From positions 1 to 61,732 of the forward strand of contig NW_021832266.1 of the NCBI RefSeq assembly GCF_006345805.1: a stretch of 61,732 nucleotides of DNA, read 5' to 3'. Below are positions 53,971 to 57,907 of this stretch, piece after piece (position 1 is the first letter of the stretch; each line of letters begins with the position of its first letter). The notes under the pieces were generated by a model. The model was not told the origin of the DNA. It saw only the letters and a program-made list of their open reading frames with translations, and searched no databases. The position numbers and the translations under genes were made by a program. This DNA is from Octopus sinensis. Its lineage: Eukaryota.

Positions 53971-54016
53971 CTCGTCATGAAATCGTCATCTGGGAAGGAA
54001 CGCCACAGAGTTGAAT
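53971..54016 (-). other. Candidate 46-nt exon
   Basis: aacttttttAG|ATTCAACTC...ATGACGAG|GTAATG with an upstream TTAAC branch-like motif. Open only in phase 1 (xSTLWRSFPDDDFMT). Confidence 0.3.
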
Positions 54017-54185
54017 CTAAAAAAGTTCCGCCAACCTTTTGTAAGTTAAACTCCTCGAGCTAACCACTTTATTTCGCTAATCAAAGGAAACAGCAGGAAA
54101 CGTCTTCCCCGGCATCATATAATACTGATTCGAAACGTTGAGAACGGAGAGCGTTTACTTTTGTGCAGTTCATAACACTTCATAC

Positions 54186-54255
54186 GTCTTTTCAAAAGCA
54201 TCATAAAAATGTTCTGCTTTCAGTTTTCTTTTACTCTTTCACGTTTTTTATCCCC
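54186..54255 (-). other. Candidate 70-nt exon downstream of the signal-peptide exon
   Basis: tgtgtttcttttAG|GGGGAT...AAGAC|GTATGA. In phase 0 it reads GDKKRERVKEN then TGA, so it is not cleanly open as assembled. Confidence 0.3.
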
Positions 54256-54744
54256 CTAAAAGAAACACAATACATGCTGCTTTCATTAGGATCTGTATAA
54301 TTGGTTTCTGCTACGTCCGTGCATTCGCGGTTCATTTTTTTGGCTTTGGAGAAGAAACCCTGGATTTGTTAGATTTCCCGCGTCATAAAAGAGTAAATTG
54401 AATATGGATATGATGATTAAATATCTAAATTTTAAATGTTCGAGGTAGAAAATTTTATTCGACTCTCTGCCCAGCTACTTCTATCGTTGGGCAATCAATA
54501 TCATCCAGGTTAGAAACCCTTGGTTTATATGCGTGCATATATGTAACTCACACCTACACATCCACGTCCTGTTACATACACTCATGTATATATACATATA
54601 TATGTCTGTATGTTTACCTGTATATATGTATGTACGTATGTGTGTAAGTGTATGTATGTACATAAATAAAGTAATGGTCACAAAAGAAGACAATATTGGA
54701 AGTACATATATTGTATTAGTTTAAAGCTTAAAAAGAAGGGTAAA

Positions 54745-54782
54745 CTCTTGATGTTTCGGACGCTAGTCCTTCATCAGAAGAA
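54745..54782 (-). ncRNA. Penelope-type minimal type-I hammerhead ribozyme motif
   Basis: Minus strand TTCTT-CTGATGA-A-GGAC-TAGC-GTCC-GAAA-CATC-AAGAG. Canonical CUGAUGA/GAAA core, 4-bp stem II, 5-bp stem I; stem III has CAUC instead of the usual CGUC. Confidence 0.7.
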
Positions 54783-55384
54783 AGAAGAGAATATGATTGG
54801 GGGAAAACAAAGGAAAAATAGAAGGGTTTCAGGACTAGGTTTTAATGCAGTTCTATGGGAGGAAAGTTAAGGAGGGAAGATAATGCAGGGTGGTGTACGC
54901 ATGTACAGGAGAGTACCCATGTATAGAAATAGACACAGGAGGAGATGTGTGTGAGTGTTGGTATGAGGGAAGCTTTGTGTGATCAGTTTGGAGACTATGT
55001 AGGTGTGTGGAGCCGTGCAAGTGTGGAAATGTAATGGCGTGGGATAGAGAGCCTGCGTAAAAAGAGGGTGGGTGCGTCGGTGTAATTGTATTATAGGAAA
55101 GAGCAGGGTGTGGAGGGGAGGAAGAGTGGCAGGCACTTGTGTGAAGCGAAAGGGGAGGTAAAAGGAATGAAGTGTTTTAAAAAAAAGGACTCCGAAAAAG
55201 TAAAAAACGGTGTAAATAGCAAAATTAACACTAGTGGCCACTCACTGAAAAACAAAGATGATGCATATATAATATATAATGTAGATACGCATATAGACAC
55301 ACGCACACTTTATATATATATATGTAACGAAATGTTAGCACCATGTATGTATTATATATATACACATGTGTGCCATATATATAT

Positions 55385-55416
<32 letters not shown>

Positions 55417-55609
55417 ATATATATAATATATATTATATTATATATATATATATATATATGTATGTATATATATAGTTTATATATATATATGTGCTTGTAT
55501 GCATGTTTGTATATTTGCGTAGTATAGCATATTGAAGCTTGGCCAACAACATGGGCTTGGCAAGATTATGCGATTGAATCCAGGAGAGAATTAAGACGTA
55601 ATCTCTTAC

Positions 55610-55684
55610 CTGCACTTCCAATGCATGGTAGGCAAGAATTAATCCAAGGAGAATCACCGTAGACACGCTTATTAACGACTTCAT
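55610..55684 (-). CDS. First coding exon (exon 55705-55610, with 21 nt of 5'UTR) of a probable secreted protein: MKSLISVSTVILLGLILAYHALEVQ, phase-0 donor
   Basis: Minus strand reads ttttttctttattttttttttcatattcttttAG|GACGAACC...ATG AAG TCG...GTG CAG|GTAAGA. Long polypyrimidine acceptor, consensus donor exactly at a codon boundary, and a basic n-region plus hydrophobic h-region typical of a signal peptide. Confidence 0.7.
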
Positions 55685-57907
55685 TGATTTAGATACCGGT
55701 TCGTCCTAAAAGAATATGAAAAAAAAAATAAAGAAAAAATGTTTAGTCATGATTTATAAAAGTGTTATTGAAAAAGTAGAAGCTGAAACGAAAAGTCCCG
55801 TAATTCGTTAGGATAGGTGGATTAATACAGAATGCTTCGATTTCAAGTAATGTAATGAAAAAAAATCAGATCAGACGACATATCGTGTGATGAGCAGACG
55901 ACAAAAAAAAATATTATATGTATGTATGTATATACGTCTGACAAACTCATTAAAACTAAACAAAATTATTATGTCGTTAAAGTAAAAAAATTGAATGAGA
56001 TTGCGAGCCTTGAAGGTGGTCACTGCTAGAATGAATAGTAAGCGAGGGTGCCTTAAATTGTTTTATTCGGATGTTTCAACGAATGGATAAGTTGGTAATA
56101 AAAAATTTGAATTTGTTTCAGATCTTTTACTAAATCCGTATGAGGCTTGAAATAAGACAAAAACTATCGCGTGTACAATTTACAATATATACTTGAGTGA
56201 CAAGAAACGTGTGTTTGTAAATTTTAAAAACCAAATATACTTGGAGAAGCTTGTTGTAATTTTCTTTTAAACATACCCCAACATGGCTACAGTTAAATGA
56301 CCGAAACAAGTAAAAGAATAAAAGAATGATGCTTGAATAAATGGGTGTGATGATACTTTACCCACACACCGCAATGTCTGGAAGCAATCACCGCTGGGAG
56401 AAGTATTTGGAGTGATATAATTGTATCATCAGTAACACACATTATGAGCAAAAGACTATAAACCTAGTCTTCAGGTAGTATCAAAATTACATATACCTGA
56501 ATAGGCTGTTAAACGTTGGTTCGAAGTTAAAATATTACTAGAACATTCAATGTTAAATAGACCAGATACAGTTCCATGGAATCTAGGCTAAAAATTACTT
56601 CCTAATAAAAGTGTCACTTGTTCAGCTGTGAATGTTTTATTCAATTTCGGATGAAAGAAACTTCTCTAATGTGATATTCACAGAAGAACGACTCTCTGAT
56701 AAGATATGCAGCTTCATGGTCAACAGATACATTATCTGCAGACAAATTCTAAACTTGATTACAAGTTTCCAGTTGCGTTTATGAAACAACAGTCCATTTG
56801 GCTACATTATCAAATGTCTACTAGTTATGAAATAAAAGTTGATGCCTTTAAAAGTGATGAGGAAAAGTTGATTCTTGTTTTAGAAATCTAATCCATTAAG
56901 TGCAAAACTTTTTATGCGAGGTATTATTTACAAGTTAATCTCTAGAGAAAATTGCAGTTTAATGTTACTTTGTAACTTTAGAACGTCTCTGATTGCGTAG
57001 AGATGATTATGATCAAAAGTTTTTTGGTCGGGGGCATCAGCCGTGTGAATCTTGAAATAAGATAAAAAGCGTACCACGCATAATTAGAGCGGACAAGAGG
57101 CAAGGGTCTATGACAATGAATATTCCCAAATAAACCATGTTTGAAAAGCCAAATATACATGAAGAGGCTTGTAAATTTTTTTAAGTCCTAGGTTTTCTTG
57201 AAATGCATTATCTAATCTATCCTTTCTATTTTTGATGAAAGAATGATGTGGTTTGAGTGAGATTTGAGTGTTATTTCTAGCAGGTCGAAATACCACGTAA
57301 CAACTTCTTTGTGGGCGGATCATTTTGTTTTTTATAGCCCATGTTCTGCAATGTGTACAGTCATTCCCCGTTGTACAAGCAATAGTGTCATTCCGATATA
57401 TGAATGGTGCTAAATTTTAATTTTAATCTTGAGAAGCTGACTTTTGTTACTAAATAGATTTGACAAATTCGATATAATTTTAATGTATGGTAATTCAGTG
57501 TGATATATATATTCTTTTCCGACCCACATCCAGCTTTCCCACTTGTATAAAAACAGAACACTATATAAAATTCTCCTTTAGTTCGGCATATTTGCCGACG
57601 GCGCATCCTCTTTTTTATTCGGCACCTTTGCCAAAGAGGCACCTCCCTCCTCCGCGCAGCACCTTGCCGGGGATCATGCTTTCTCCGAATACTTTCCGAC
57701 CGTTGGTTTTCGATTTAAGACGCAGCACTTCTTCTTTCTAGTATGCCTATTTCTTTTTCCTACCCGACACTTGACCGGTGGTACATGACTACTATTGCTA
57801 TTGCTATTACTATTATTCTCTTACTAATGTAATACAGCCGACAACTAACTGTCGTTTCTTTTACAATTGTGACGGCTTGAATAAAATCGGTTAGAAACAA
57901 TTTTTTT

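Follow-up and report, generated by a model that had tools for sequence, protein, structure and literature searches.

The small conductance calcium-activated potassium (SK) channels SK1-3 (KCNN1-3) carry, directly after the S1-S2 loop, a transmembrane helix S2 which in human SK2 (PDB 8v2g) follows the pattern K.LIS.ST.ILLGLI..YHA.E.Q. In insects, as seen in partial SK proteins of Lucilia cuprina and in the Drosophila melanogaster protein GM01744p (Q8T3J7), the corresponding exon has 32 codons and the S1 exon ahead of it ends in ...AGVYTK. We describe here a 61,732-nt stretch of Octopus sinensis DNA (contig NW_021832266.1, hereafter the window) in which an exon at 55705-55610, on the minus strand, presents the same S2 pattern, likewise directly after the S1-S2 loop. 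This exon has the length and the boundaries of the insect one, to which it is identical at 24 of 32 residues. The locus differs from KCNN1-3 in that just one gene exon lies inside the window, and from GM01744p in that the cDNA of the latter runs through the EVQ/gt donor into the intron. We consider it almost certain that 55705-55610 is a constitutive-looking internal exon of the octopus SK/KCNN channel gene. A preliminary description of this DNA had read the same exon as the probable beginning of a small secreted peptide.

Results

An exon of 32 codons open from its acceptor

The minus strand has an acceptor rich in pyrimidines (tttttttcatattcttttag/G), which ends directly 5' of position 55705. 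An ATG at 55684-55682 opens a run of 25 codons, MKSLISVSTVILLGLILAYHALEVQ, that ends at the donor CAG/gtaaga past 55610. The reading frame is already open at the acceptor, with seven codons (DEPVSKS) ahead of the Met, so that the exon counts 32 codons. Its features are the following.

55610 to 55705, minus strand: internal coding exon assigned to the SK (KCNN) gene, 96 nt, 32 codons, phase 0/0, encoding DEPVSKSMKSLISVSTVILLGLILAYHALEVQ
55706 to 55725, minus strand: acceptor and polypyrimidine tract, tttttttcatattcttttag, with the AG at the equal position in the homologous loci L001, L002, L003 and L004
55602 to 55609, minus strand: donor gtaagaga after codon Q32, with a GT after ...EVQ in every invertebrate read-through open reading frame (ORF)

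The exon and the region downstream of it in which a continuation had been proposed are single-copy in the window, as determined by self-BLAST, and a mutually exclusive second copy of the S2 exon was found neither in the window nor in L001. As judged from the comparisons given below, the coding exon 55705-55610 is real and its splice sites are functional. The preliminary description was right on this point, since its 25-codon segment belongs to a genuine exon and the splice sites are as it had described them.

The exon encodes helix S2 of an SK channel

The 32 residues of the exon alone matched the Pfam family SK_channel (PF03530) with 33.9 bits (gathering cut-off 31.8; E=3.5e-8), at profile positions 47-76 of 118. 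When the ORF reading through the donor was used as query, PF03530 was present in all of the 48 homologues, which are mostly read-through ORFs on invertebrate genomic contigs, and in every one of them the match was confined to the exon-encoded part of the query. The cryo-EM chains of SK2 (8v2g, 9o85 and 9vu9) aligned with exon residues 5-32 at an E-value of about 2e-5, and weaker matches in the structural database were obtained with SK4 (6cnm). The segment aligned to the SK2 structures is what we take to be transmembrane helix S2, following the established topology of SK channels.

In genomic ORFs of insects and other invertebrates the unit of 32 codons recurs in the form ...(c)ag/xSFYSxALKxLISVSTVILLGLIxAYHALEVQ/gt..., and the boundaries and phase of the octopus exon equal those of the S2 exon in the SK genes of other bilaterians, L001-L004 included. 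One of the read-through ORFs, P0049 (320 aa, from an invertebrate contig), holds five tandem units resembling the S2 exon (QASFYSTALKTLISVST...), four of them degenerate and the last one intact, which suggests that the S2 exon was duplicated locally, in tandem, in some arthropod-like genome.

By homology, the hydrophobic stretch of the exon is helix S2 of an SK (KCNN) channel and not a signal peptide. With PF03530 and the SK2 structures on this same stretch, the idea of a lineage-specific secreted peptide is not sustained.

Codon-level conservation across the whole exon

Two independent contigs, L001 (a 454-kb ENA contig) and L004 (from the Logan assembly of SRR9969974), both probably from cephalopod genomes, encode an exon protein equal to that of the window except for one V-to-I change. 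At the nucleotide level, 22-23 bases differ between the window and these two contigs, and 19-20 of the differences fall at third codon positions. Over the 96 bases compared with L001, the 23 differences are distributed as 20 at codon position 3, three at position 1 and none at position 2 (binomial P=1.6e-7 for the skew), and they amount to 20 synonymous codon changes for a single non-synonymous one, the V-to-I. The similarity is restricted to the exon: within +/-10 kb, just about 121 nt around it could be aligned between the window and L001, with 77.7% identity, and in the three-way alignment of the window, L001 and L004 similarity is lost at both splice sites. This substitution pattern shows purifying selection over all 32 codons.

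The codons ahead of the ATG are informative in this respect. Six of the seven are changed and every change is synonymous, hence coding begins right at the acceptor, ahead of the Met. Met8 is an ordinary residue inside the protein rather than a start codon, contrary to what had been supposed; besides these conserved upstream codons, 84 residues precede the exon in the Octopus vulgaris protein presented below.

The first residues of the exon, DEPVSKSM, are common to the window (55705-55682, minus strand), O. vulgaris, L001 (9980-10003) and L004 (457-480), and all other homologues start the exon with xSFYSxAL. At this place human SK2 presumably reads ASLYSLAL, of which the SLAL part alone was confirmed by the structure match.

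Chance expectation of a signal-like exon

Both strands of the window were scanned with a rule requiring a Met, a basic n-region, an uncharged hydrophobic core of 12 residues and a GTRAG donor. The ATG 55684 site was the only match of this signal-like ORF plus donor in the whole window, and Markov simulations of the window gave 0.09-0.39 signal-like sites expected per window. Because the pattern alone would recur often in a gigabase-scale genome, external evidence is required. By itself the signal-like pattern is not outstanding genome-wide and is no evidence either way; it is homology and codon-level conservation, both comparative in nature, which raise this exon above chance.

An Octopus vulgaris gene model links the exon to helix S1

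An exhaustive HMMER search of cluster representatives led to CAI9731318.1 (UniRef100_A0AA36FE42), a protein of 131 aa with the title 'small conductance calcium-activated potassium channel protein-like [Octopus vulgaris]'. It contains all 32 exon residues with 100% identity, placed between 84 residues (MSYTSEDV..., including helix S1) and the tail IHRIHRENVMKRDQR, and so joins the exon to the S1 helix and to a conserved N-terminal ..RKR motif. The S1 exon of this model (...ADVYGK) is joined to exactly the exon described here, and this in turn to a 48-nt terminal exon; the linkage of the S2 exon to the S1 exon is thus shown in the O. vulgaris gene model, which ends after S2. The gene range covers 179,339 bp of an 89.6-Mb chromosome of GCA_951406725.2.

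The 15-residue tail was located by tblastn at 24951-24907 of the window, with 14 of 15 residues identical and one D/E difference. On the strength of these matches, the O. vulgaris locus is evidently the orthologue of that of the window, or the same locus; in view of the D/E difference, the window DNA probably represents a close relative of the sequenced O. vulgaris or another allele. Residues 1-84 of CAI9731318.1 had no match in the window (tblastn), which means that the S1 exon lies past 61732. The layout is then as follows.

24904 to 24951, minus strand: 48-nt exon, IHRIHRENVMKREQR followed by a TGA stop, with a ttttcag acceptor; counterpart of the terminal coding exon of CAI9731318.1
24952 to 55609, minus strand: intron, 30.7 kb long if spliced as in O. 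vulgaris; holds the frames (a) and (b) treated below, microsatellites and repeats resembling short interspersed nuclear elements (SINEs)
55726 to 61732, minus strand: part of the upstream intron; the S1 exon (...ADVYGK) is beyond the window end

Some 100 nt downstream of the 24951-24904 exon there is a SINE-like repeat, which does not extend into the exon. No homologue and no domain were found for the 15-residue tail, and the 24951-24904 exon, on present sequence evidence, may be either the genuine end of a truncated isoform or an annotation artefact. The fallback proposal, by which 55705-55610 would open a larger gene whose other exons lie far away, was correct as to the larger gene and wrong as to its being the first exon, since an S1 exon precedes it. 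The exon is already annotated as SK-like in Octopus vulgaris and the family is well known, so it is not new.

Frames (a) and (b) inside the intron

Two continuations of the supposed signal peptide had been put forward. They read as reported: 54359-54234 plus a stop codon gives GFFSK...NVKE, and the frame from 54255 onward gives GDKKRERVKEN and a stop. No Pfam match was obtained with (a), and a fusion of the exon with (b) matched through the S2 residues alone. In L001, the 10 kb that follow the exon hold a counterpart of neither, and both are skipped by the O. vulgaris model. The intron thus most probably contains (a) (54359-54231) and (b) (54255-54186) as frames open by chance, and the homopolymer frameshift invoked to extend (b) is a hypothetical error without support.

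Search for the rest of the gene

The window was searched by tblastn with the Lucilia SK protein, with an S2 exon of the type seen in molluscs, and with peptides guessed for S1 and for the next exon; an SK2 sequence served as a further query, for guidance only. In other animals, LF.IDN.ADDWRIAM opens the exon that follows ...EVQ, and this motif was likewise taken as no more than a search lead. Together with regular expressions for the motifs DDWR, GYGD, HPIPG and FEKRKR, applied in six frames, these searches revealed no SK exon in the window other than that of S2. A full-length cephalopod SK protein was not retrieved, as queries with a chimera of the exon plus LFVIDNGADDWRIAMT and with CAI9731318.1 gave short fragments alone. 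Ten other long ORFs of the window had only sub-threshold chance Pfam matches, and no tRNA was found in the window.

Repeats in the window

A repeat family of about 200 bp is present in at least 20 copies on both strands, with 70-91% identity (reference copy 24600-24808; other copies include 8617-8825, 35031-35239, 43859-44066, 37292-37489, 3719-3927 and 58713-58897). One of its frames reads ...NLNSER.DRRNAAKHFARRAN, and the family is probably a SINE. A second dispersed repeat, with the frame RRASFSFRLPNPLTRLWSARGYSRRHLPKVPRSGTEPG, occurs at 23551-23868, 29446-29934, 39629-39916, 44470-44793, 48650-49102, 49939-50310 and 12788-13204; no Pfam match and no tRNA-like part (ARAGORN) were found in it. 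Microsatellites are long and frequent, including (TTA)60, (ATA/ATT)n and (AT)n, at 53746-53925, 53035-53190, 55375-55490 and 52739-52803, and an (AT)n tract starts 120 nt into the intron that follows the exon. Two low-complexity arrays of kilobase scale extend over about 11500-12060 and 21080-22500.

Discussion

As an internal exon of an SK channel gene, 55705-55610 encodes the end of the extracellular S1-S2 loop together with the entire S2 helix of the channel subunit, and the hydrophobic run LISVSTVILLGLILAY spans the membrane, uncleaved, as one of six helices. The gene has very large introns, with the S1 exon upstream beyond the window and the canonical next exon more than 55 kb downstream of 55610, outside the window as well. 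The transcript would be expected to run on into exons for the pore and for calmodulin binding beyond the window, as it does in every characterised SK channel.

Some observations weigh against this assignment. Exons for S1, S3-S6, the pore and calmodulin binding were not found in the 61.7-kb window by tblastn or by motifs, and continuity with a complete channel (S3-S6, the GYGD pore and the calmodulin-binding domain) is something that we infer. The sole octopus model that was retrieved is truncated, with 131 aa. Finally, DEPVSKSM at the start of the exon departs from the xSFYSxAL of all other matches.

Taken literally, the O. vulgaris model describes an S1-S2 product of 131 aa ending at 24951-24904, that is, a truncated non-conducting SK fragment which might modulate full-length subunits. 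CAI9731318.1 does have this S1-S2-tail structure and is the longest product recorded for the 179-kb gene, the window contains its terminal exon, complete with a good acceptor and a stop codon, and lacks the canonical next SK exon throughout the 55.6 kb downstream of 55610. The O. vulgaris annotation drew on Iso-Seq, RNA-seq, protein alignments and ab initio predictions together (PMC10700109), which makes transcript support for the model possible. Such a product nevertheless appears unlikely to us. Its 15-residue tail, without homologue or domain, sits beside a SINE-like repeat, genes with very long introns are often split by automated pipelines, and the strength of selection on S2 is that expected of a working channel helix. 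The fly cDNA GM01744p gives a truncated S1-S2 product too, simply by intron retention, so that a truncated SK fragment on record is not necessarily a functional isoform. The 131-aa model is probably incomplete. In any case, this alternative bears on isoform usage alone and leaves the identity of the exon unaffected.

The DEPVSKSM start deserves a separate comment. Kcnn is among the potassium channels reported as duplicated in cephalopods in a squid single-cell atlas (PMC12240821), and DEPVSKSM may mark one duplicated cephalopod Kcnn paralogue. The wider proposition, in which the 131-aa form would be an expressed, truncated and non-conducting isoform modulating channel assembly, and/or the gene would be a cephalopod KCNN paralogue with a remodelled and then conserved DEPVSKSM, is quite doubtful in our view.

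It could also be argued that the exon is a decayed or orphan copy, either an exon duplicate or a pseudogene fragment, with no contribution to a protein, as it is isolated within 61.7 kb of sequence rich in repeats and its first eight residues are unlike those of other taxa. This is very improbable, given that the frame and the splice sites are intact, that synonymous changes outnumber non-synonymous ones by 19-20 to 1 across diverged genomes whose flanks do not align, and that three sources conserve the divergent DEPVSKSM start as well.

The internal SK exon assignment leaves next to no room for a start at ATG 55684 with a cleavable signal peptide of 25 residues, continued by (a) or (b) into a neuropeptide-, toxin- or antimicrobial-like product: the Lys near the N-terminus, the hydrophobic core and the absence of any other such ORF plus donor in the window are countered by six synonymous changes in the codons ahead of the ATG, by the 84 residues with helix S1 that precede the exon in O. 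vulgaris, by the homology of the segment with helix S2 of solved SK2 structures, by the lack in (a) and (b) of a domain or of an L001 counterpart within 10 kb downstream, by the dependence of (b) on an invented frameshift, and by a Gln at position -1, which under the -3/-1 rule makes a poor signal-peptidase site. The likeness to the signal peptides of neuropeptides and toxins, with an n-region and a hydrophobic core after a Met, is superficial; the segment encoded by the exon differs from them in lying away from the N-terminus, in its homology to a transmembrane helix and in lacking a conserved mature-peptide exon.

The present result is mainly a correction. A small internal exon encoding a transmembrane helix and carrying an in-frame Met can mimic a signal-peptide first exon, a confusion which is quickly resolved by homology together with codon-position analysis. 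With regard to the octopus, the SK locus has very large introns (a gene range of 179 kb and more than 55 kb to the next canonical exon), and the probable incompleteness of the 131-aa O. vulgaris model is useful for the curation of ion-channel genes in cephalopods.

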